From sequence record PQ898602.1: 64,000 nt of DNA. One strand, written 5' to 3'. How positions within the stretch are numbered: position 1 is the stretch's first letter; each line of letters starts with the position of its first letter. The notes beneath the pieces are model-generated. The model searched no databases, was not told where the DNA came from, and saw nothing but the letters and a program-made list of their open reading frames with translations. This document shows positions 11,743-63,759 of this stretch, in pieces. The position numbers were made by a program, and so were the translations under genes.

Positions 11743-11862
11743 TTTGTGGATATCTAAACCTTTAATATGGATTTGTCCTATTAAAGGTTTACGTGTTATC
11801 CTTTAATAACGGATGCCTTCGGGGTCCACAAAATCTAATCTCGCTTTTCAAGGAGAAGTACA

Positions 11863-12297
11863 ATGGTAAACATCCAGAAGTATCATGCTGCCGATTTGCC
11901 GCAGTTAATGGACAAGATTGTCAAGAATAGTATTGGAATGGACGATTACTTTGATCGTTTTTTCTTTCAACAGGAAACACAAAGTAACTACCCACCTTAC
12001 AATCTTGTGCAAGTCAGCAACGTGGAGTCTATACTAGAGATTGCACTCGCTGGATTCAAAAAAGAGGAAGTTAATGTCTACACCCAAGATGGTTCTCTGT
12101 TTGTTGAAGGACAGAAAGAGGCGAAAGAACCAAAAACTAACTACCTGCACAAAGGTTTGGCTCAACGGAGTTTTACACGTTCCTGGACCCTCAGTGACGA
12201 CACGGAAGTTCGATCAGTTACTTTTGAAGATGGGCTTTTGACAGTCAATCTCGGAAAAGTTGTTCCTGAACATCACCAGAGAAAGGACTATCTTTAA
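11863..12297 (+). CDS. hsp20: Small heat shock protein Hsp20
   Basis: NYPPYNL, EIALAGF, HKGLAQRSFTRSW, DGLL; aggag RBS. Confidence 0.95.
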   Translation: MVNIQKYHAADLPQLMDKIVKNSIGMDDYFDRFFFQQETQSNYPPYNLVQVSNVESILEIALAGFKKEEVNVYTQDGSLFVEGQKEAKEPKTNYLHKGLAQRSFTRSWTLSDDTEVRSVTFEDGLLTVNLGKVVPEHHQRKDYL

Positions 12298-12321
12298 ACC
12301 AAAACAAAGGAGTCTAGATCA

Positions 12322-12374
12322 GTAGTAACCGCTACAGAAATGTATCATGTTGATACATTATACTTCTATATAAT
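12322..12374 (+). promoter_or_regulatory. Putative NtcA-like site plus perfect palindromic operator and -10
   Basis: GTA-N8-TAC (12322-12335); AATGTATCA-tgt-TGATACATT (12339-12359); TATACT 12359, TATAAT 12369. Confidence 0.5.
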
Positions 12375-12396
12375 ATGTACCATTGGAGGACGACTT

Positions 12397-12480
12397 ATGA
12401 ACTTAACAGCCGCCACTCTTATCATCGGAACCATTTCGACTCTTTTTAGTTACGCAGTCCTTGCGCCTACACTACCCTAA
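12397..12480 (+). CDS. 27-aa hydrophobic peptide MNLTAATLIIGTISTLFSYAVLAPTLP
   Basis: Strong ggagg RBS and upstream promoter; below ORF-track cutoff. Confidence 0.6.
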   Translation: MNLTAATLIIGTISTLFSYAVLAPTLP

Positions 12481-12524
12481 TGGACCACCTATGGATAAAT
12501 AATGACACCCCTTGAGGTGGACTC

Positions 12525-12602
12525 ATGTTAATCGGTCTCATTATTGGTCTATTCGCGTTCATGGTCATCATCGCTTCAATTATTGCACCCAAAGAAGAAT
12601 AA
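12525..12602 (+). CDS. 25-aa single-TM peptide MLIGLIIGLFAFMVIIASIIAPKEE
   Basis: TAAATA at 12496-12501, gaggtgg RBS. Confidence 0.55.
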   Translation: MLIGLIIGLFAFMVIIASIIAPKEE

Positions 12603-12625
12603 ATACAACTGAATATCGTCGCCGC

Positions 12626-12667
12626 AGGGGTCAACTGGCAAAATCCAGTTGAAACCCCTCTTTTTTT
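12626..12667 (+). terminator. Long hairpin terminator
   Basis: aggggt-caactgg-caaaat-ccagttg-aa-acccct then T-tract. Confidence 0.7.
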
Positions 12668-12740
12668 ATGTCTATATAATTTGTTAGGACGCACTTACCC
12701 ATTTTATGGATGGGTAACTATATCCTCTACATTAAATGAA

Positions 12741-12971
12741 ATGACTAAACTATTCGTTCTTCCTCTAATGGTTGCTACTTTCGCATCTATCACTGGAGGT
12801 ACTGTTGCAGAAGCAAAACCTAGAATGTTCCATGGCAATCCTGGTCCTGGTGGTAATCCTGGAACCCTTCATCGTCCACGGAGACGTTGTACATTCAAAC
12901 GTCCATGTTCACGAATGCCTCAACTTCCTGATTTTGGTACTCCAATGCCTAGAGGTGGATTTCGCCGTTGA
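12741..12971 (+). CDS. Small exported basic protein (signal peptide, Pro/Gly/Arg-rich)
   Basis: MTKLFVLPLMVATFASITGGTVAEA-K signal peptide; terminator gagacc-ttcg-ggtctc-T7 follows. Confidence 0.55.
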   Translation: MTKLFVLPLMVATFASITGGTVAEAKPRMFHGNPGPGGNPGTLHRPRRRCTFKRPCSRMPQLPDFGTPMPRGGFRR

Positions 12972-13034
12972 TATACAGAGACCTTCGGGTCTCTTTTTTT
13001 GTGTTATAATATAGGTGACTTTTTTGCCCAAATC

Positions 13035-14585
13035 ATGCCTTGGTTGAGTCTTGCGATATTGTTTCCAATCGCTGCCGCACTTGGTATTCCTCTCCTACCC
13101 GATAAAGGTGATGGAAAAGTAGTTCGGTGGTATGGATTATCAATTACACTAATCACATTTCTGATTACGATTGCGGGGTATCTGAATGGATATGACCCTT
13201 CGATCAGTGATCTTCAGATGTCAGAAAGAATCAGTTGGGTTCCTCAACTTGGACTTACTTGGTCCGTAGGTGCAGATGGATTGTCTATGCCTTTGATTCT
13301 TTTGACTAGTTTCATTACTAGTCTTGCTGCACTTGCTGCATGGCCTCTTCGGTTCAAACCGAAACTCTTCTACTTCCTTCTTCTCCTGATGGATGGTGGA
13401 CAGATTGCAGTTTTTGCGGTTCAAGATCTTATTCTTTTCTTCCTTTCATGGGAACTGGAACTTGTTCCTGTGTATCTAATGTTGGCGATCTGGGGTGGTA
13501 AGAAACGTCAGTATGCTGCGACTAAGTTCATCATTTACACCGCAGGTAGTTCTTTATTCATTCTTATTGCAGGACTTGCAATGGGATTCTGGGCATCCAA
13601 TGGTGCTCCGAACTTTGAATACACTTACCTGATGAATCAGGGTTTCCCGAAGAACTTCCAACTCTGGTGTTATGCAGGATTCTTGATTGCATTCGGTGTC
13701 AAACTTCCAATCGTTCCTTTGCATACTTGGTTGCCTGATGCTCATGGTGAAGCAACTGCACCAGTTCACATGTTGCTTGCGGGTATTCTTTTGAAGATGG
13801 GTGGATATGCACTCCTGCGATTCAACTGCCAACTTCTTCCAGAAGCACATAAAGTATTCGCACCAATTTTGATTGTTCTTGGTGTTGTCAATATCATCTA
13901 TGCTGCATTGACATCATTTGCACAAAGGAATCTCAAACGGAAGATTGCATATAGTTCAATCAGTCACATGGGATTTGTACTCATCGGTATCGGAAGTTAT
14001 AGTGCTCTCGGAACCACTGGTGCAATGCTTCAGATGGTCAGTCATGGTTTGATTGGTGCATCTCTATTCTTCCTAGTGGGTGCAACATATGACCGAACCC
14101 ATACTCTTCAACTCGATGAGATGGGTGGAGTTGGTCAGAACATGAAAATCATGTTTGCACTTTGGGTTATGTGTTCCATGGCATCCTTGGCACTGCCAGG
14201 TATGAGTGGATTTGTGAGTGAACTAATGGTCTTTGCTGGATTTGCAACTGACTCGGTATACGATCTTTCTTTCAGAATTATTGTTTGTTTGACTGCTGCA
14301 ATCGGTGTTATCCTGACTCCGATTTATCTCTTGTCTATGTTGCGTGAGATCTTCTATGGAACTCCTAACAAAGAACTCGTCGATCACACTAACTTGGTAG
14401 ATGCAGAACCCAGAGAAGTTTATATCATCAGTGCTCTATTGGTTCCGATTATTGCAATCGGATTGTATCCAAAGATCATGACCGATACCTTCCAGTCATC
14501 GATTGATTCACTAGTAAATCGAGACAAAGCGGTGTTGGTTAGGGAATCCCCATTCACGATCAGGTACACGCCACCAACTGCATAA
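13035..14585 (+). CDS. ndhD: NAD(P)H-quinone oxidoreductase (NDH-1) subunit 4, NdhD1/D2 clade
   Basis: [58 protein letters not shown]. Confidence 0.95.
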
Positions 14586-14591
14586 ATTATC

Positions 14592-14628
14592 AGGGAGGTT
14601 TGACACCTCCCTTTTTTCATGGTATCCT
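14592..14628 (+). promoter_or_regulatory. Overlapping terminator and sigma70 promoter
   Basis: gggagg-tTTGACA-cctccc-T6; TTGACA-N17-TATCCT. Confidence 0.7.
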
Positions 14629-14649
14629 AGTGGGAGGTAAATTCTAATT

Positions 14650-15063
14650 ATGAGTAACGTTAAACTGATCGTTCTGAAGACTGGAGAACGAATCATTACT
14701 GAAGCAAAAGAATATGTTGATGATCAAGACCGAGTTCGTAGTGTCGTGTTTATCAAACCAATGCTTGTGGATTTTCTTACTCCAGAACTTCTCGTAGAAG
14801 ATCCTGATGACGATAGTGATGTTGTTGAACATCGAGTTGCGTTCATGCCATGGCAACCACTTTCTCAGGATGTTGAGTTTGCAATCAGTCCCGATCACAT
14901 TGCAACTATCTGTACTCCTATTGACTGGGTTGTGGAGTCTTATACTAATAAGATGAAGGGTGGTGATCCCACAAACTACGGAGAACCTGATGATACTCTT
15001 CGGATTGAAGATGATGAAACTCTTGATAGTATTGAAGTAACTGGAGAACTTTTAAATGAATGA
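14650..15063 (+). CDS. Conserved hypothetical protein upstream of gp43
   Basis: VKLIVLKTGERII...FMPWQPLS. Confidence 0.75.
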   Translation: MSNVKLIVLKTGERIITEAKEYVDDQDRVRSVVFIKPMLVDFLTPELLVEDPDDDSDVVEHRVAFMPWQPLSQDVEFAISPDHIATICTPIDWVVESYTNKMKGGDPTNYGEPDDTLRIEDDETLDSIEVTGELLNE

Positions 15064-15307
15064 GAATATTCAAGTAATCGTACTTGTTAATGGTGGTACG
15101 ATTATTAGTAGAATTGACCAAGTTATGTCTGAACTTGGTGAACCAGACTGCAAACTTACTAAACCACGTCTTGCAGAAGGGATGTTGCCCTGGATGGGAC
15201 ATTTGACTGATCAGACTGATGATATTATGATTTCATCGGATAAGATCCTCACAATGGTTGATCCGAAACAATCACTACTTGATGCATATTTGACCGCTAT
15301 TCAATGA
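15056..15307 (+). CDS. Conserved hypothetical protein
   Basis: ELGEPDCKL..P...PW...ISSDKILT. Confidence 0.75.
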   Translation: MNENIQVIVLVNGGTIISRIDQVMSELGEPDCKLTKPRLAEGMLPWMGHLTDQTDDIMISSDKILTMVDPKQSLLDAYLTAIQ

Positions 15308-17802
15308 AGTTCTATACAAGTGTTTTCCAACTAGGTAATGACATCCTCGTCCGAGGTTATGAAAATGGAAAACATTTCACGAAACGTGAACCTTTTCAAC
15401 CAAGATTTTTTGTTCCCTCCAAACGAGAAAGTAAATTCAAGACCCTTGATGGTCAAGATGTAGAACCCATTCATCCTGGTACTATCCGAGAATGTAAAGA
15501 ATTCTTGGAAAAGTATGACGGGGTGAATGGTTTCAAAGTCTATGGGAATGATCGATTCGTATACCAATACATTGCTCAGAACTACCCTGAGGAAGAGATC
15601 AAGTTCGATATTTCTAAAATCAAAGTTATCACCATTGACATTGAGGTTGCGGCGGAGAGTGGATTCCCCGATGTATTCAACTGCGCTGAAGAACTTCTAC
15701 TGATTACTGTTCAGGATTACAATACCAAACAGATCATCACCTTTGGTTCTCGACCTGCAAACATCACACAGAAGAACGTCAAGTTTATCCAGTGTGCGGA
15801 CGAGTATGACCTTATTGGTAGATTCATGGATTGGTGGACTGCAAACCCGCCAGAGGTCGTCACAGGGTGGAATAACGAGTTGTATGACATGCCATACCTT
15901 GTGGGTCGTATGTCCCGCCTGATGGGTGAGAAGTTCGCCAAACGACTCTCTCCGTGGAATGTGGTGCGTGTTGATGAAGTCACCATCATGGGTCGCAAAC
16001 AACTCAGTTGTCGCATCGCTGGTGTGTCTATCCTGGACTACCTGGATCTGTATAAGAAGTCTCCTGCAACTCCAAACCAAGAGAGTTATCGATTGGATCA
16101 TATTGCATTCATGGAGTTGGGTCAGAACAAACTGGATCACTCTGAGTTCGATACTTTCCGAGAGTTCTACACTAACGATTGGCAAAAGTTCGTCGAATAT
16201 AACATCGTTGACGTGGAACTGGTTGACCGACTGGAGGATAAACTCAAACTGATTGACCTTTGTTTCACCCGTGCGTTTGACGCCAAGGTGAACTTCAATG
16301 ATATTGCATACCAGGTTCGTACTTGGGATGCGATTATCTACAATTATCTTCTCAACAGAAACATTGTGATTCCGCAAAAGGAACGCAATAGTAAGAGTGA
16401 GAAGTATGCGGGTGCGTTCGTGAAAGAACCTATCCCAGGATCTTATGAGTGGGTTGTGAACTTTGACCTTAACTCTCTATATCCCCACCTGATCATGCAG
16501 TACAACATCTCTCCAGAGACGTTGTTGGAACAAAAACACCCTAGTGCAACTGTTGATAAGATTCTCAAGAAAGAACTGACTTTCGAGATGTACAAGGACA
16601 ACGCAGTTTGTGCCAATGGTGCAATGTATCGCAAGGATGTCCGTGGGTTCCTACCAGAACTCATGGAGAAGATGTACAACGAACGTGTTATCTTCAAGAA
16701 GAAGATGATCGAGGCGAAGAAAGCCTATGAGAAGACTCCTACTAAAGCTTTGGAAAGAGAGATCTCTCGTTGTGACAACATTCAGATGGCGAAGAAGATT
16801 GCACTGAACTCTGCTTATGGTGCCATTGGTAACGAGTATTTCCGATACTACAAACTTGCAAACGCAGAAGCGATCACCCTATCTGGTCAGGTTTCGATTC
16901 AATGGATCGAAGCGAAGATGAATGAATATCTAAACAAAGTCTTGAAATCTGATGGAGTTGATTATGTTATTGCTATCGATACTGATTCTATCTACCTTAA
17001 TATGGGTCCTTTTGTTGACGCTGTATTCAAAGGGAGAGAGGCGTCTACTGAGGAGATTGTCAATTTCCTTGATAAGGTCAGTCACATGGAACTTGAAAAG
17101 TATATTGAAAGTTCTTACGAAGAGTTGGCCGACTACCTCAACGCCTACGAAAACAAAATGGTAATGAAACGCGAGAACATCGCGGAACGTGGTATCTGGA
17201 CTGGTAAAAAACGTTATATCCTTCGTGTGTGGGATAGTGAGGGTGTTCGTTATGAGAAACCCAAACTTAAGATGATGGGTATTGAAGCTATCAAGACCTC
17301 AACTCCTGCACCTTGTCGGAAATACATTAAAGATGCACTCGACATCATCATGACAAAGGAAGAGGATGATGTGATTGACTTCATCGAGAATGCTCGTAAA
17401 GAGTTTAAGAATCTTCAACCTGAAGAGATTGCATTCCCTCGTAGTGTATCTGAGATTAACAAGTGGATGTCTCGTACAGACATGTATAACAAGGGATGTC
17501 CGATTCACGTCCGTGGTGCTATCCTATATAATCATTACACTAAAAAAGCTGGACTTGATAAAAAGTATGCACCCATTCAAAGTGGTGAGAAGATCAAGTT
17601 CCTGTATTTGAAAGTGCCCAATCCTATTCAGGAGAATGTTCTCTCCTTTATCCAAGATTTTCCCCGAGAACTTGGGTATGAGAAATATGTGGATTATGAT
17701 GCTCAGTTTAATAAATCTTTTATTGAACCTATGAAGATCATTCTCAATGCAATTGGTTGGTCCGTAGAACGGAAAGTTAGTTTGGAGTCTTTCTTCGCAT
17801 GA
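15304..17802 (+). CDS. gp43: DNA polymerase gp43 (family B)
   Basis: DIE exonuclease, DLNSLYPH, K..LNSAYG, DTDS; no intein or intron. Confidence 0.98.
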   Translation: MKFYTSVFQLGNDILVRGYENGKHFTKREPFQPRFFVPSKRESKFKTLDGQDVEPIHPGTIRECKEFLEKYDGVNGFKVYGNDRFVYQYIAQNYPEEEIKFDISKIKVITIDIEVAAESGFPDVFNCAEELLLITVQDYNTKQIITFGSRPANITQKNVKFIQCADEYDLIGRFMDWWTANPPEVVTGWNNELYDMPYLVGRMSRLMGEKFAKRLSPWNVVRVDEVTIMGRKQLSCRIAGVSILDYLDLYKKSPATPNQESYRLDHIAFMELGQNKLDHSEFDTFREFYTNDWQKFVEYNIVDVELVDRLEDKLKLIDLCFTRAFDAKVNFNDIAYQVRTWDAIIYNYLLNRNIVIPQKERNSKSEKYAGAFVKEPIPGSYEWVVNFDLNSLYPHLIMQYNISPETLLEQKHPSATVDKILKKELTFEMYKDNAVCANGAMYRKDVRGFLPELMEKMYNERVIFKKKMIEAKKAYEKTPTKALEREISRCDNIQMAKKIALNSAYGAIGNEYFRYYKLANAEAITLSGQVSIQWIEAKMNEYLNKVLKSDGVDYVIAIDTDSIYLNMGPFVDAVFKGREASTEEIVNFLDKVSHMELEKYIESSYEELADYLNAYENKMVMKRENIAERGIWTGKKRYILRVWDSEGVRYEKPKLKMMGIEAIKTSTPAPCRKYIKDALDIIMTKEEDDVIDFIENARKEFKNLQPEEIAFPRSVSEINKWMSRTDMYNKGCPIHVRGAILYNHYTKKAGLDKKYAPIQSGEKIKFLYLKVPNPIQENVLSFIQDFPRELGYEKYVDYDAQFNKSFIEPMKIILNAIGWSVERKVSLESFFA

Positions 17803-31187: not shown

Positions 31188-31204
31188 GTATGCTTTTTAC
31201 GCAT

Positions 31205-31831
31205 ATGAAAAGGTTAAACACACTAGTTCTAAACATCACGGTTGCAATTATCGACTTCTTGTATCGTGGTAGGGATTTTCAAAGATTTTGGGTGCTTGAG
31301 GAGATCGCTCGAGCGCCCTATTTTGCGTTTTTAAGTGTCTTACACTTCAGGGAATCATTGGGTCTGCGAGGTCAGTGGCACTTACACTTGATGAAAGAAC
31401 ACTTCGAGCAGAGCGTCAATGAAACAGAACATCTGGAATATATGGAAAGCCGCGGCGGTGCTGATTATTGGATCGATCGTTTTGTGGCCCGACACCTCGT
31501 CCTTGTCTATTATTGGATCAATGTGGTTTATTATTGGTTGGCTCCTATGTCTGCTTACCATCTCTCCGAAGAAATAGAACTCCATGCCGCAGAGACATAT
31601 GCAGAATATCTAACTCGTTTTCCAAAGGATGTAAAGATCTGGGAAATCATGAACGACGAGATTCATCATTGGCAGGAACTTAGGGAAGCTGCAAGGATCA
31701 TTCATCCTGACAGATTAACTGTAAACGAAAAAGATGCTGAACCATTCCCACCAGATGTGAGTGACTTGGGGGTTACAACTCAAATTATTGGATATCAAGA
31801 ACATGAACTTATTTCTGAGACCACTAAGTGA
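31205..31831 (+). CDS. ptox: Plastoquinol terminal oxidase
   Basis: RFWVLEEIARAPYFAF, NETEHL, EIELHAAETY, DEIHH di-iron motifs. Confidence 0.93.
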   Translation: MKRLNTLVLNITVAIIDFLYRGRDFQRFWVLEEIARAPYFAFLSVLHFRESLGLRGQWHLHLMKEHFEQSVNETEHLEYMESRGGADYWIDRFVARHLVLVYYWINVVYYWLAPMSAYHLSEEIELHAAETYAEYLTRFPKDVKIWEIMNDEIHHWQELREAARIIHPDRLTVNEKDAEPFPPDVSDLGVTTQIIGYQEHELISETTK

Positions 31832-46925: not shown

Positions 46926-47432
46926 TTATCGTACTATCAAACTACCATTCATGCTACCATGAATCGTACACTGGTATTCATAATTGTTTGGCGCATCATG
47001 TGGGATTGTAAACACCTGTGTACCACTTTGGGAACCACTAACATATGTTCCTACACCAATAGATGTTCCTGAAAATTGAATACGGAATGGATGAGTACCA
47101 CCAGTTGAGTTTTCAAAGATATATGAAAATCCTCTTTGAACCTGGATGACTGGATTATTAACAGTATTTAAAACTCCTGGACCTGCAAAACGATATGCAG
47201 AGGATCCATCAGCAGTAATATAATACTTAATTGCAAATGCTACATCAGATCCATCACCTACAGTTGAATTGGTTCTAAAACCAGTTGCAGTACAAACACC
47301 TGTGAGGGTAGTATTAGTTTGAATAGCAACGTGACCTGCAGTGATGTTCAGGTCACCATTACTTTCCAAAGTCGGAGTTCCAGTCGCTCCGACTAAGTTA
47401 ATATCCTTTACACCAAAAGATTTCTCTGCCAT
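46926..47432 (-). CDS. Fibre-associated protein with C-terminal cupredoxin-like domain
   Basis: HPFRI...YQCTIHGSMNG; minus TAAATA at 47451-47456. Confidence 0.65.
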   Translation of the reverse strand: MAEKSFGVKDINLVGATGTPTLESNGDLNITAGHVAIQTNTTLTGVCTATGFRTNSTVGDGSDVAFAIKYYITADGSSAYRFAGPGVLNTVNNPVIQVQRGFSYIFENSTGGTHPFRIQFSGTSIGVGTYVSGSQSGTQVFTIPHDAPNNYEYQCTIHGSMNGSLIVR

Positions 47433-58851: not shown

Positions 58852-59496
58852 ATGAAGATCTTTATTGACACCGCACAGACCTCTGAAATCCATAGTGCAT
58901 TTCAGACTGGTCTAGTTGATGGTGTTACAACAAATCCATCTCTCATCATGAAGAGTGGTCGCGATCCTGAGGATGTGTATCAAGAACTGATTGAAGCAGG
59001 TATTCCTGATATCAGTATGGAGGTTGTCGGTACTGTTGGTGAGATGTATAATGAAGGTATCCGTCTAGCTGAAAAGTTTGGAGACCAAGCCACTATCAAG
59101 TTGCCTTGCACTCCTGATGGTTTGCAGGTTTGTCGTCATCTGACCGCAAAAGATATTCGTACTAATGTTACCCTTATCTTCTCTGCTTCTCAGGCTGTAC
59201 TTGCTGCAAAAGCTGGTGCAACTTACATTTCACCTTTTGTTGGTCGTCTTACCGATAATGGTTTTGATGGTCTTGAATTGATTCGTACTATCTACGAAAT
59301 CTATAAGAAGGACGGATGTCCTACCGAGATTCTTGCTGCATCTGTACGTAGTCCAGAAGTTGTTGCCCTTTGTTATCGTGAAGGTGCAGACATTTGTACT
59401 ATTCCCCCAGGTGTTTTCAACAAGATGTATGAAAGTGTCCTGACCCGTGAAGGACTTGCTATTTTCCAAAAAGACTGGGATTCTATCCAGAAGTGA
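58852..59496 (+). CDS. talC: Transaldolase (TalC family)
   Basis: MKIFIDTA, DGVTTNPSL, IKLP, NVTLIFS, SPFVGRL. Confidence 0.96.
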   Translation: MKIFIDTAQTSEIHSAFQTGLVDGVTTNPSLIMKSGRDPEDVYQELIEAGIPDISMEVVGTVGEMYNEGIRLAEKFGDQATIKLPCTPDGLQVCRHLTAKDIRTNVTLIFSASQAVLAAKAGATYISPFVGRLTDNGFDGLELIRTIYEIYKKDGCPTEILAASVRSPEVVALCYREGADICTIPPGVFNKMYESVLTREGLAIFQKDWDSIQK

Positions 59497-60203: not shown

Positions 60204-60380
60204 ATGTCACAATTCTGCTTCACCGATCTCTCTGATGAACAACGCCGATTGTTAATCGACGCAGTATGGATGAGACAAAGATCCTATATTGCTGGAGATC
60301 GAATGTTCAGAGAGTATGGGAAGATGTTAGATGATTTGAGAATTGGTTTTGAAGATTACGTTCCATGTCAATACAGATGA
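60204..60380 (+). CDS. 58-aa hypothetical protein
   Basis: gagga RBS; ATGA coupling to zwf. Confidence 0.6.
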   Translation: MSQFCFTDLSDEQRRLLIDAVWMRQRSYIAGDRMFREYGKMLDDLRIGFEDYVPCQYR

Positions 60381-61714
60381 AAGCTATTGTAATTTTCGGT
60401 GCAACAGGAGATCTCTGTAAGAGAAAACTTATCCCTGCACTTCATGAATTGTTCCAAAGAAACCTACTTCCAGAAAACTTTCTAATTGTAGGATCTTCTC
60501 GGAGAGACCCAGGTACCAAGTCCTGGACTGATAGCCTCGGGGATTACCCCGAGGATTTTTTGCAAATGATGGACTATGTGTCCACTGATCTGGACAACCC
60601 AGAATCACTACATCATCTGGATTATCTAAAGGAGTACGATACAACTTACTTCCTTTCAGTTCCACCAGAGAGGTATGCAAATGCAATTGTCAACCTTAAA
60701 GCATCGGGTGCTCTCGATGATCCCGAAAGGTCCAGATTGGTTATCGAAAAACCCTTTGGGCACGATTATAAATCTGCTGATAATCTACAGTCAGTGGTGG
60801 GCAGACATTTACGCGAGAAACAAGTATATCGCATTGACCATTATCTTGGTAAAGATACTGTCAATAACATCCTTGCTACTCGTTTCAGTAATATTCTTCT
60901 TGAACCACTTTGGAATCGTCAGTACATAGAAGAAGTTCAAGTCTTTGCAACTGAAACTATCGGTTGTGAAGGTCGTGCTCAATACTACGAAACTTCTGGT
61001 GCAGTGAGGGACATGTTGCAGAATCATCTGCTTCAAGTCCTTGCGTTGATTGCAATGGAACCTCCTTGTAAGAACGATGCAAAGGAGATTCGCAGAGAGA
61101 AAACTAAAGTTCTTGCTGCGACCAGACTTGGTGATGAAATGGTCCTTGGTCAATATCAATCGTATAGAGACGAGGATGGTGTTGACGAGAATAGTACCAC
61201 TCCAACATTTGTTGCTGGTAATCTATTCATTGACAACTGGAGATGGGAGGGTGTTCCTTTCCACTTCATGACTGGTAAGAAAATGCCAGTATCTTGTGTT
61301 GAGGTTGTGGTTAAATTTAAGTCACCACCGCAAACACTATTTGAAGGTCATGAGTGTAATGACAGAATCGTAATGCGATTCCAACCTGATCCTCACTTGG
61401 ATATGAGAATCGATATCAAGTCTCCTGGACTTGACGATAGAGTTGAACCTGCAACACTGCAGTATCACTATCCAAAAGATAGAGCTGTAGATGGTTATGT
61501 TCGACTTCTGAATGATGCAATTACTGGTGATCAATCACACTTCGTTCATTCTGATGAAGTGTTAGAATCTTGGAGAATTGTTGATGATCTCCTTTGTACT
61601 GGAGATCAATGTCGTATCAGAACCAAACCTTATATCTATCATGATGGACTATGGGGACCTTGGTACAAACTAGACCAAATCACTAACTGGGACTTTCCAC
61701 TGAGGTTAAATTAG
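60377..61714 (+). CDS. zwf: Glucose-6-phosphate dehydrogenase
   Basis: IFGATGDL, IEKPFG, RIDHYLGK, RDMLQNHL. Confidence 0.97.
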   Translation: MKAIVIFGATGDLCKRKLIPALHELFQRNLLPENFLIVGSSRRDPGTKSWTDSLGDYPEDFLQMMDYVSTDLDNPESLHHLDYLKEYDTTYFLSVPPERYANAIVNLKASGALDDPERSRLVIEKPFGHDYKSADNLQSVVGRHLREKQVYRIDHYLGKDTVNNILATRFSNILLEPLWNRQYIEEVQVFATETIGCEGRAQYYETSGAVRDMLQNHLLQVLALIAMEPPCKNDAKEIRREKTKVLAATRLGDEMVLGQYQSYRDEDGVDENSTTPTFVAGNLFIDNWRWEGVPFHFMTGKKMPVSCVEVVVKFKSPPQTLFEGHECNDRIVMRFQPDPHLDMRIDIKSPGLDDRVEPATLQYHYPKDRAVDGYVRLLNDAITGDQSHFVHSDEVLESWRIVDDLLCTGDQCRIRTKPYIYHDGLWGPWYKLDQITNWDFPLRLN

Positions 61715-62039: not shown

Positions 62040-63079
62040 AAGTAGGACTAATCGGACTCGGACGGATGGGCGAAGGAATGTCCCGTCGAATGATGGACCG
62101 AGGAAACATCGAAGTTTATGGTTACAGACGAAACTATGACAAGGCACAAGAAGCAGCAAAGAGTGGGTATATTACTGCAGCTGCAGATTCTCTGGAAAGC
62201 CTTGTTCAAGTAGTCAAAGACGGCGGATCTGCGGGTCAAGTACCTGGAATCTTCCAACTTGTTATCCCCGCAGAACTCGTACAGGAGACTATCAATGAGT
62301 TATTACCATTACTTAGTGATGGAGATATTGTTATTGATCATGGCAATTCCAATTTTAAGGACTCGCGCCGCAGAGCAGAGTCCCTGGAGAAATTGGGCAT
62401 CCAATATATTGATTGTGGTACTAGTGGTGGTGTCTACGGCTTGGAGCGTGGATACTGTCTTATGGTTGGAGGCAGAGATCAAGCAGTCGGCGTATGCCGC
62501 CCTCTATTCGACGCCCTCGCACCAGGCATCAGTGCTGCCCCACGAACAAGTGACAGAGACAACTTCACTTGGTACCCAGAAGAATTTGGATGGATTCATG
62601 CAGGCGCCCCAGGTGCAGGTCACTTCGTGAAGATGGTTCACAATGGAATCGAATACGGAATTATGCAAGCATACGCCGAAGGATTTAATATCCTGCATGA
62701 GGCTAATGCTGGGTCGAAGTACGTTAAAGAGGGTGATGCAGAAGTCGCTCCAATGGATTGCCCAGAAGACTATTGTTATGACATTAACGTTGCTAAAGTG
62801 GCTGAGTGTTGGCGCCGCGGTAGTGTTGTTGGTTCTTGGTTACTTGACCTTACTGCGGATGTATTACGCCGCGACCGAGAGCTTGATGCTTTCGCTGGGG
62901 GTGTCTCCGATTCTGGCGAGGGACGTTGGACTGTTCACGCTGCTGTGGACCTTGGGGTACCCTCTCCTGTCATCAGTAGTGCATTGTGGTCGCGTTTTGA
63001 GTCGCGCCGTCTTGGTGCTTTCGCAGCCAAGGTTCTAAATGGTATGCGTGCTATGTTTGGAGGACATGATGTCCGATAG
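62036..63079 (+). CDS. gnd: 6-phosphogluconate dehydrogenase (short Gnd family)
   Basis: GLIGLGRMG, IDHGNS, DCGTSGG, KMVHNGIEYG. Confidence 0.96.
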   Translation: MKVGLIGLGRMGEGMSRRMMDRGNIEVYGYRRNYDKAQEAAKSGYITAAADSLESLVQVVKDGGSAGQVPGIFQLVIPAELVQETINELLPLLSDGDIVIDHGNSNFKDSRRRAESLEKLGIQYIDCGTSGGVYGLERGYCLMVGGRDQAVGVCRPLFDALAPGISAAPRTSDRDNFTWYPEEFGWIHAGAPGAGHFVKMVHNGIEYGIMQAYAEGFNILHEANAGSKYVKEGDAEVAPMDCPEDYCYDINVAKVAECWRRGSVVGSWLLDLTADVLRRDRELDAFAGGVSDSGEGRWTVHAAVDLGVPSPVISSALWSRFESRRLGAFAAKVLNGMRAMFGGHDVR

Positions 63080-63158: not shown

Positions 63159-63628
63159 GTATTTGCATTGGAATGAATACGTTGTTAGCAACTGCTGCAA
63201 CAATGATTGTTGGTGAAGTGACTCCCGAATCAGTTAGAACTTACGTTTCACTTAACGCTGATCCTTGGGACAATAATGCACAAATAGACTTTGAGGAACC
63301 AATGGGTTCTTTTGGTCTTGAATATGATATTCATACAAATGTCAGATTGTTTGCAGAGCATCTTTCGTCACCGATGCAATGTAATGATCACCCAGGAGTA
63401 AATCATGCTGGAGTTAAACTTCTCGCACCAATCAATGACTTTACTCTTTACTCTGGGATCAGCATTAACAATTCTGATTTTGATAGTAATGATCGGTTTG
63501 AAGGACCACTGGTATCGTTAGGTGTGGAATATGGTGATGATTTTAAAGTCTATGCCGAACATCTTGCCAGTGTAAAATCAATTGAAGATGGTAGAACATC
63601 TTTCGGATTCAAGGTATTTTTCAAATGA
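63155..63628 (+). CDS. Putative small outer-membrane beta-barrel protein
   Basis: Alternating beta pattern, internal repeat G.EY....V.L.AEHL.S, aromatic C-terminus GFKVFFK. Confidence 0.5.
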   Translation: MSICIGMNTLLATAATMIVGEVTPESVRTYVSLNADPWDNNAQIDFEEPMGSFGLEYDIHTNVRLFAEHLSSPMQCNDHPGVNHAGVKLLAPINDFTLYSGISINNSDFDSNDRFEGPLVSLGVEYGDDFKVYAEHLASVKSIEDGRTSFGFKVFFK

Positions 63629-63759
63629 TTCTAGCAAACGTTCTTTTATATGCATGTGTTCCATTTTGTCTAGTGACATTATTCTTTGGAACTAAAGGTG
63701 GTTACTATGATACTGATAAGTATGATGGTGATGGTACTGCACATAAGGTATTAAAATGA
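63625..63759 (+). CDS. ndhP: NDH-1L small subunit NdhP homolog (44 aa)
   Basis: Single TM then FFGTKGGYYDTDKYDGDGTAH, matching the NdhP tail FFG..GFYDTD.Y.G.G.AH. Confidence 0.85.
   Translation: MILANVLLYACVPFCLVTLFFGTKGGYYDTDKYDGDGTAHKVLK

Follow-up and report, generated by a model that had tools for sequence, protein, structure and literature searches.

An intact gene for an NdhD1-type subunit of NDH-1L, under strong purifying selection, in Synechococcus phage S-SCSM2R and related cyanomyoviruses

Synechococcus phage S-SCSM2R (244 kb, host WH7803) carries an intact gene for a large membrane subunit of cyanobacterial NDH-1. The stretch that we analyzed, called the window below, comprises 64,000 nucleotides (positions 124001–188000 of sequence record PQ898602.1), and all coordinates are counted from its first letter. 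The gene, ndhD, occupies 13035..14585 on the plus strand, where the record lists locus SSCSM2R_157 with the product "NdhD". We find that it encodes a 516-aa NdhD1-type subunit 4 of NDH-1L, that it is a host-derived gene in genuine phage genomes with phage genes on its flanks, and that it is maintained there by strong purifying selection. The finding is genuine but not novel, as the presence of ndhD in S-SCSM2R had been annotated and published before. The published account (PMC12801897, BMC Biol 2025) includes ndhD, ndhP, AOX, talC, zwf and gnd among the auxiliary genes of the phage, offers a metabolic scheme for it and presents its ndhD as the first report for a cyanophage genome. Two further isolates, both Kanaloavirus with host WH8102, also have an annotated ndhD (S-8S53 and S-8S56; OQ504982 and OQ504984), and passages in two further papers (PMC10452541, PMC3877843) credit Sharon et al. 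2011 with having suggested cyanophage ndhD, ndhI and ndhP from metagenomics. Our additions are incremental: a single-origin phage clade, a conserved genomic slot, strong constraint, the exchange of the gene as a cassette and a corrected distribution of ndhP.

The reading frame of ndhD is uninterrupted from the ATG at 13035 to the stop codon at 14583–14585. Its product scores 951.8 bits against the NCBIfam model NF002713 (cut-off 827), with residues 1–501 aligned to positions 8–506 of the 533 in the profile, and matches Pfam PF00361 with 218 bits (E=1.6e-64). Against chains of known structure, it reaches 758 bits to NdhD1 from Thermosynechococcus elongatus NDH-1L (6hum_D), compared with 293 bits to NdhD3 of the NDH-1MS form (6tjv_D). 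An MDGGQIAVF core is common to the phage protein and the NdhD1 orthologs of picocyanobacteria, whereas the D3/D4 paralogs read ..SG.V.GAF. A preliminary description of the window, made from the sequence alone, had called the product an intact 516-aa NdhD of the D1/D2 clade, in agreement with these scores, and the ten-letter motif that it quoted lies at residues 118–127. The likeness to the T. elongatus subunit (chain D of 6HUM, 6KHI and 6NBY) extends over residues 2–501 and includes the same channel residues and membership in the same orthogroup. The phage gene differs from its cyanobacterial counterparts in being virus-encoded, in sharing no more than 81% identity with the picocyanobacterial orthologs sampled, in forming part of a separate clade, in a C-terminal tail 14–19 aa shorter than those of the hosts, and in having a stand-alone promoter and no Shine–Dalgarno (SD) sequence.

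NdhD is an antiporter-like proton channel, which carries protons and not electrons. Seven residues of the phage protein (E140, K223, H237, H245, K254, H311 and E396) are invariant across 53 phage, 114 host and seven other cyanobacterial NdhD1 sequences. We take these, from a motif-based mapping to the numbering of Escherichia coli NuoM, to be the glutamate of transmembrane helix (TM) 5, the lysines of TM7 and TM8, the glutamate of TM12 and the linking histidines of antiporter-like subunits. Among the phage copies, 317 of the 516 columns do not vary, and L133I is the only strictly fixed difference between phages and hosts. The relaxed selection considered in the preliminary description is not what we observe: in pairwise Nei–Gojobori comparisons of the 53 phage copies (980 pairs with a synonymous divergence, dS, of 0.05–1.5), the ratio of nonsynonymous to synonymous divergence (dN/dS) has a median of 0.078, an interquartile range of 0.069–0.089 and a maximum of 0.129, far from 1, and the value for the host orthologs (n=114) is 0.137. 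These data bear on whether the phage protein could act as a dominant-negative decoy that poisons the assembly of host NDH-1 or its proton pumping. The shortened tail and the residue at position 118, which is L or I in phages versus A or V in hosts, would fit such a role. However, a decoy has no need of a complete proton channel held at a dN/dS of 0.08, and the invariant channel residues, the many unvarying columns and the lone fixed host difference likewise argue against it, making this explanation highly improbable. As judged from its sequence, phage NdhD appears to be a canonical proton-channel subunit rather than a decoy.

The assignment to the D1 type is borne out by comparison with cellular paralogs. 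Picocyanobacterial genomes contain one ortholog that is 77–81% identical to phage NdhD and a second paralog at ~54%, with D3/D4-like genes (37–43% identity) only in those of the Synechococcus/Cyanobium type. In other cyanobacteria, NdhD sequences fall into tiers of 69–72%, 57–62% and 37–44% identity; the first scores ~750 bits, equal to T. elongatus NdhD1, and its NdhD1 label rests on this match in score to 6hum_D, Synechocystis NdhD1 and NdhD2 not being included by name. The ortholog is present in 224 of 251 host-family genomes, and no cellular copy exceeds 81% identity to the phage protein. The preliminary description had proposed a phylogeny against the host paralogs as a check. In our maximum-likelihood tree (IQ-TREE quick search, LG+C20+F+G4, 82 rows), all 26 representative phage sequences form one clade, with a stem of 0.31 and a Shimodaira–Hasegawa-like approximate likelihood-ratio support (SH-aLRT) of 100. 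The clade lies within the NdhD1 orthogroup (SH-aLRT 100), with the D2-like and D3/D4-like paralogs outside, and its sister is the marine Prochlorococcus/Synechococcus branch (SH-aLRT 96), to the exclusion of freshwater Cyanobium and Vulcanococcus. The S-8S53 protein is nested in the phage clade despite the different genomic position of its gene, and one capture followed by movement within phages is the simplest history. Separate captures from hosts for each of the three genomic contexts described below are rejected, since all copies fall in the one phage clade.

In IMG/VR, 67 loci encode NdhD proteins 82–100% identical to that of S-SCSM2R, and in ~55 of these the gene occupies the same slot, in the order RegA–sHsp–ndhD–DUF6561×2–gp43. 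The window has this arrangement as well, with the gene for the small heat-shock protein (sHsp, an HSP20 domain match at 11863–12297) upstream of ndhD and the two DUF6561 genes and gp43 downstream, so that the location between hsp20 and the gp43 operon had been correctly described. In most loci with ndhD in the RegA–sHsp–ndhD–gp43 slot, the polymerase is only 65–70% identical to the one in the window, compared with 83–91% for NdhD. A second context, of the S-8S53 type, has thyX–denV–phoH downstream of ndhD, and a third has a tail-fiber gene upstream and helicase and methyltransferase genes downstream. The S-8S53 and S-8S56 genes, for which the annotation reads NADH dehydrogenase subunit 4, fall in one phage clade with the S-SCSM2R gene and share 84–85% protein identity with it, but they are located between a psbD/2OG-oxygenase region and thyX–denV–phoH and have a hairpin/promoter of their own. 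From the nesting of their sequences, this position appears to be a relocation within phages and not a second capture from a host. The expectation that ndhD would be uncommon in phages thus stands for isolates, with three true cyanophage records among 50,697, and fails for environmental viral contigs, given the 67 loci.

Cellular contamination is known in viral metagenome collections (PMC3877843), which raises the question of whether ndhD might be a passenger, that is, recently captured host DNA or an artifact of assembly or binning with no role for the phage. We give this next to no credence. The gene is present in a cultured and sequenced isolate as well as in two others, phage genes lie on both sides of it in ~60 contigs, and the phage proteins are monophyletic and, among the 224 host-family genomes, reach at most 81% identity to cellular copies; the strong purifying selection described above also contradicts a passenger. 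Host contamination of the viral contigs with ndhD is ruled out by the phage genes that neighbor it in all contexts.

The known architecture of the complex suggests what such a gene may do. The NDH-1 forms share a common core and differ only in their NdhD and NdhF isoforms; NDH-1L runs cyclic flow and respiration from ferredoxin, and at its distal end NdhD is held between NdhP and NdhQ (PMC6992706). We consider it probable that the phage supplies NdhD1, along with NdhP, and in this way sustains or raises NDH-1L, with ferredoxin-to-plastoquinone flow and proton pumping for ATP. An ancestor of the T4-like cyanomyoviruses would have captured NdhD1 once, from a marine picocyanobacterium, and ndhD would have been kept as a self-contained, early-type cassette in the hyperplastic slot that separates hsp20 from the gp43 replication genes. 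We infer the timing of NdhD production, its membrane insertion, its incorporation into NDH-1L and the physiological effect as follows. Early in infection, ndhD would be transcribed by the host RNA polymerase, and the protein would be inserted into the thylakoid membrane and take the NdhD1 position in the distal arm of the host NDH-1L, beside NdhF1, NdhB, NdhQ and the phage-encoded NdhP. The amount of NDH-1L would then be sustained or raised once host gene expression shuts off, and the complex would keep up the flow from ferredoxin to plastoquinone and the pumping of protons, both in cyclic flow around photosystem I and in respiration. The phage would thereby obtain ATP for its replication, with no net NADPH or CO2 fixation.

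Several points weigh against this role. The physiology reported for cells infected with S-SCSM2R consists of photosystem II parameters only (PMC12801897), and most isolated cyanomyoviruses do without ndhD. The C-terminal tail of the phage protein is shortened relative to those of the hosts, and there is no evident reason for NdhD1 to be limiting. Host-derived electron-transport subunits are familiar from cyanophages: psbA/psbD, and ndhI and ndhP as in P-TIM68, are likewise under purifying selection and are presumed to top up a host complex (PMC12801897, PMC10452541). NdhD differs from these as a large, 14-helix proton-channel subunit found only in a subset of cyanomyoviruses, compared with ndhP in all 10 searched. 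In the most abundant phototrophs of the ocean, cyclic electron flow and respiration are driven by NDH-1L. If viruses encode a core proton-pumping subunit of it, phages would adjust the ATP/NADPH balance of infected cells at complex I in addition to the photosystems. The phage NdhD1 lineage is old, of single origin, strongly constrained, widespread and found in a conserved slot; experiments could target it well and specifically, since its peptides and alleles can be told apart from those of the host, phage and host NdhD differing at ~20% of residues.

Given that the NDH-1 forms differ only in isoforms mounted on a common core (PMC6992706), the effect could alternatively be one of re-partitioning. 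Phage NdhD1 and NdhP would then compete with the host NdhD3/NdhD4 modules for the shared NDH-1M core, shifting it from the CO2-uptake forms NDH-1MS/MS′ to NDH-1L and coupling the known block that phages impose on carbon fixation to more ATP-yielding cyclic flow. The D3/D4-like paralogs that genomes of the Synechococcus/Cyanobium type have besides D1 and D2 would provide the competitors, and the phage also encodes CP12 and pentose-phosphate genes (PMC12801897). However, the two Prochlorococcus genomes that we searched have two NdhD paralogs each and no D3/D4-like match, yet S-SCSM2R infects Prochlorococcus too, according to the title of the published account (PMC12801897); re-partitioning therefore cannot be the general reason for keeping ndhD, and we regard it as unlikely. 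A related and similarly doubtful proposal is a virus-specified distal arm, made of phage NdhD1, NdhP and possibly one-helix microproteins such as the 27-aa product described below, which would be mounted on the NDH-1M core to give a hybrid NDH-1L, with the core re-partitioned from the CO2-uptake forms. Such a virus–host hybrid, if it formed, would mechanically link the known shutdown of carbon fixation by viruses to additional proton pumping and ATP.

Returning to NdhD1 as a supplement to NDH-1L, its relation to the other auxiliary genes in the window can now be considered. The presence of zwf, gnd, talC, PTOX and ndhP had been correctly noted, and all have domain or structure matches: an AOX/PTOX-type plastoquinol oxidase at 31190..31831 (+), unlinked to ndhD (PF01786, 43.3 bits against a cut-off of 22.7); talC at 58852–59496 (+), with a transaldolase domain; zwf at 60377–61714 (+), with a G6PD domain; gnd at 62093–63079 (+), with a 6PGD domain; and ndhP at 63625..63759 (+), which encodes a 44-aa, single-helix subunit of NDH-1L (E=3.7e-9 to 6khi_P). 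PTOX lies 18 kb from ndhD, and talC, zwf, gnd and ndhP lie 46–50 kb away. The preliminary description had combined the six genes into an integrated circuit, in which NADPH from the pentose phosphate pathway feeds NDH-1, NDH-1 reduces plastoquinone and PTOX oxidizes it, yielding ATP and redox balance that do not depend on linear flow, possibly in the dark. In support of it, none of the six genes is missing or looks damaged, and the five full genomes that carry ndhD all have ndhP, PTOX and zwf.

This co-occurrence is not specific to ndhD. We found ndhP in the four other full ndhD-carrying genomes (L217–L220), and equally in five of five cyanomyoviruses without ndhD (S-IOM18, S-P4, S-E7, S-TIM5 and P-TIM68; E values of 1e-17 to 1e-26). 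PTOX and zwf, found in all five full ndhD carriers, are also present in S-IOM18, the sole control without ndhD that was tested for them. The six genes therefore do not form one coherent set, being spread over 50 kb, with ndhP, PTOX and zwf also found where ndhD is absent. The supposed electron path meets difficulties of its own. Cyanobacterial NDH-1 takes electrons from ferredoxin and not from NADPH (PMC6992706), so a route from pentose-phosphate NADPH would first need FNR to run in reverse, and PTOX pumps no protons. Nor can NdhD itself be a member of an electron-flow circuit: because it is a proton channel and not an electron carrier, it matters only through the amount or type of the assembled complex, and it would increase plastoquinone reduction only where the assembly of NDH-1L is limited by it. 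As ndhD is also passed on as a cassette of its own and lies 18 to 50 kb away from the other genes, we find the integrated circuit improbable. Since ndhP, PTOX and zwf occur in cyanomyoviruses that lack it, ndhD is an add-on to a common module and not part of a matched set. A specifically matched pair of ndhD and ndhP is rejected on the ndhP count of five in five.

In both S-8S53 (OQ504982.1, 133355–136333) and S-IOM18 (HQ317383.1, 88507–91761), a span of ~3 kb holds PTOX, ndhP and zwf, a proximity that would suit the integrated circuit. The PTOX–ndhP–zwf cluster is recurrent and independent of ndhD. In S-SCSM2R, PTOX is 29 kb from zwf. Altogether, 10 of 10 cyanomyovirus genomes searched contain ndhP homologs, mostly as hypothetical or unannotated ORFs. 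These counts come from per-genome profile searches; a database-wide tblastn search with the 44-aa NdhP is insensitive and missed the S-8S53 copy. The published account names P-TIM68 as the sole known carrier of ndhP (PMC12801897), which is too narrow: cyanophages have the gene far more often than the literature on S-SCSM2R states.

The sequences that border ndhD point to its behavior as a mobile unit. Upstream, a terminator-like hairpin followed by a T-run (12977..13001, plus strand; hairpin AGAGACC-TTCG-GGTCTCT at 12977–12994) ends the preceding cassette, which contains the gene hyp156. It is followed by a perfect extended −10 element, TGnTATAAT (13002..13010, plus strand), 25 nt 5′ of the ndhD ATG, for which a consensus scan found no −35 box. 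Downstream, a putative composite terminator/promoter (14592..14628, plus strand) consists of the hairpin AGGGAGGT-TTGAC-ACCTCCCT and a T-run (14592–14617), with TTGACA in the hairpin loop and TATCCT 17 nt downstream. By its sequence this element ends ndhD and could start the DUF6561–gp43 unit. The −10 and the terminator that had been ascribed to ndhD are thus both in place. Hairpins like the downstream one follow ndhD in three other loci (L007, L013 and L014), and in ~20 other loci inspected, the sequence before nearly every phage ndhD, relocated copies included, has a GC-rich hairpin followed by a T-run and TGnTA[T/A]AAT; the descending arm of this hairpin often contains a TTGACA-like box. 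Comparison of phage loci also identified a conserved hairpin with the core aactggcaaaatccagtt (12633–12650), a T-run and TATATAAT, at 12626..12680 on the plus strand. This aactggcaaaatccagtt module is the commonest and lies directly 5′ of ndhD in most relatives, whereas in S-SCSM2R the hyp156 cassette intervenes.

Alleles of ndhD also appear to cross between phage backbones. One contig, L026, has a gp43 that is 99.9–100% identical to those of L007, L009 and L011, of the S-SCSM2R-like group, but its NdhD is only 87% identical to theirs; it is 95% identical to the NdhD of a distant phage lineage, represented by L037 and L040, for which gp43 identity is 67%. Mapped as a label, the backbone requires one change on the gp43 tree, compared with three on the NdhD tree. 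The L026 allele stems from recombination at the cassette or from chimeric assembly of the contig. Taken with the bordering signals, ndhD behaves, as far as sequence comparison can tell, as a terminator/promoter-flanked cassette that has been moved and allele-swapped between phage lineages. It resembles the cassettes bordered by PeSLs, the composite terminator/early-promoter stem-loops of T4-like phages (PMC2839356, PMC4122927), in that stem-loops of this composite type appear to border ndhD and that relatives differ there by whole-cassette insertions or deletions and by allele swaps. A difference is that PeSLs were first defined in T4-like phages of enterobacteria and vibrios. Moreover, with up to three mismatches allowed, the 64-kb window contains the hairpin core AACTGGCAAAATCCAGTT only once, and because it is not a repeated motif there, we liken ndhD to a PeSL cassette but stop short of classing it among them.

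Contigs from RNA libraries also cover this region. Ten RNA-labeled runs contain part of the stretch, and we compared four of them over 11800–15400. Contigs of two studies match parts of ndhD with 99–100% identity: the X4 contigs (records 4 and 5) cover 13828–14100 and 14193–14533, and an X8 contig (record 24) covers 12991–13272 and so takes in both the promoter and the beginning of ndhD. DNA carry-over is possible in such libraries, and the contigs give neither strand nor level; they are consistent with transcription of ndhD in the sea and are not proof of it. A joint of 12657 to 12991 in these contigs corresponds to relatives that lack the hyp156 cassette, with the two flanking hairpin/promoter modules joined. 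A further joint, of 12421 to 12597, is present in the same region.

Two unannotated micro-ORFs lie upstream of ndhD. The first, at 12397..12480 on the plus strand, encodes a putative 27-aa single-helix protein (MNLTAATLIIGT...) and has the SD sequence GGAGG 8 nt upstream. It is conserved in 33 viral loci, with eight invariant positions and always 120–270 nt 5′ of ndhD; it is missing from G316 as well as from the contexts in which ndhD has been relocated, and in S-IOM18 the match is partial. The second, at 12525–12602 (+), encodes 25 aa (MLIGLIIGLFAF...), has the SD sequence GAGGTG and is found in only five viral loci, with no family, PDB or host match. Neither product matched a PDB chain at E values up to 10, whether searched as single sequences or with a 15-sequence profile, and in five host genomes no homolog was found, the lone match (E=0.17) lying inside a 442-aa frame. 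With no PDB or host homolog, homology of the micro-ORFs to NdhQ is unsupported.

Some other genes of the window deserve mention. The gene annotated as PetE (167 aa, 46926–47432, minus strand) has no Pfam match at E≤1e-5, which is unexpected for plastocyanin, and the annotation may need checking. The hyp156 gene (12741–12971, plus strand) encodes a small protein with a signal peptide, predicted to be secreted; elsewhere it lies beside psbD in S-IOM18 and beside a capsid gene in S-P4 and S-E7. The two tandem DUF6561 genes (14650–15307, plus strand), one of which has a weak Sm-like match, are kept as a pair across all cyanomyovirus contigs, always between ndhD and gp43.

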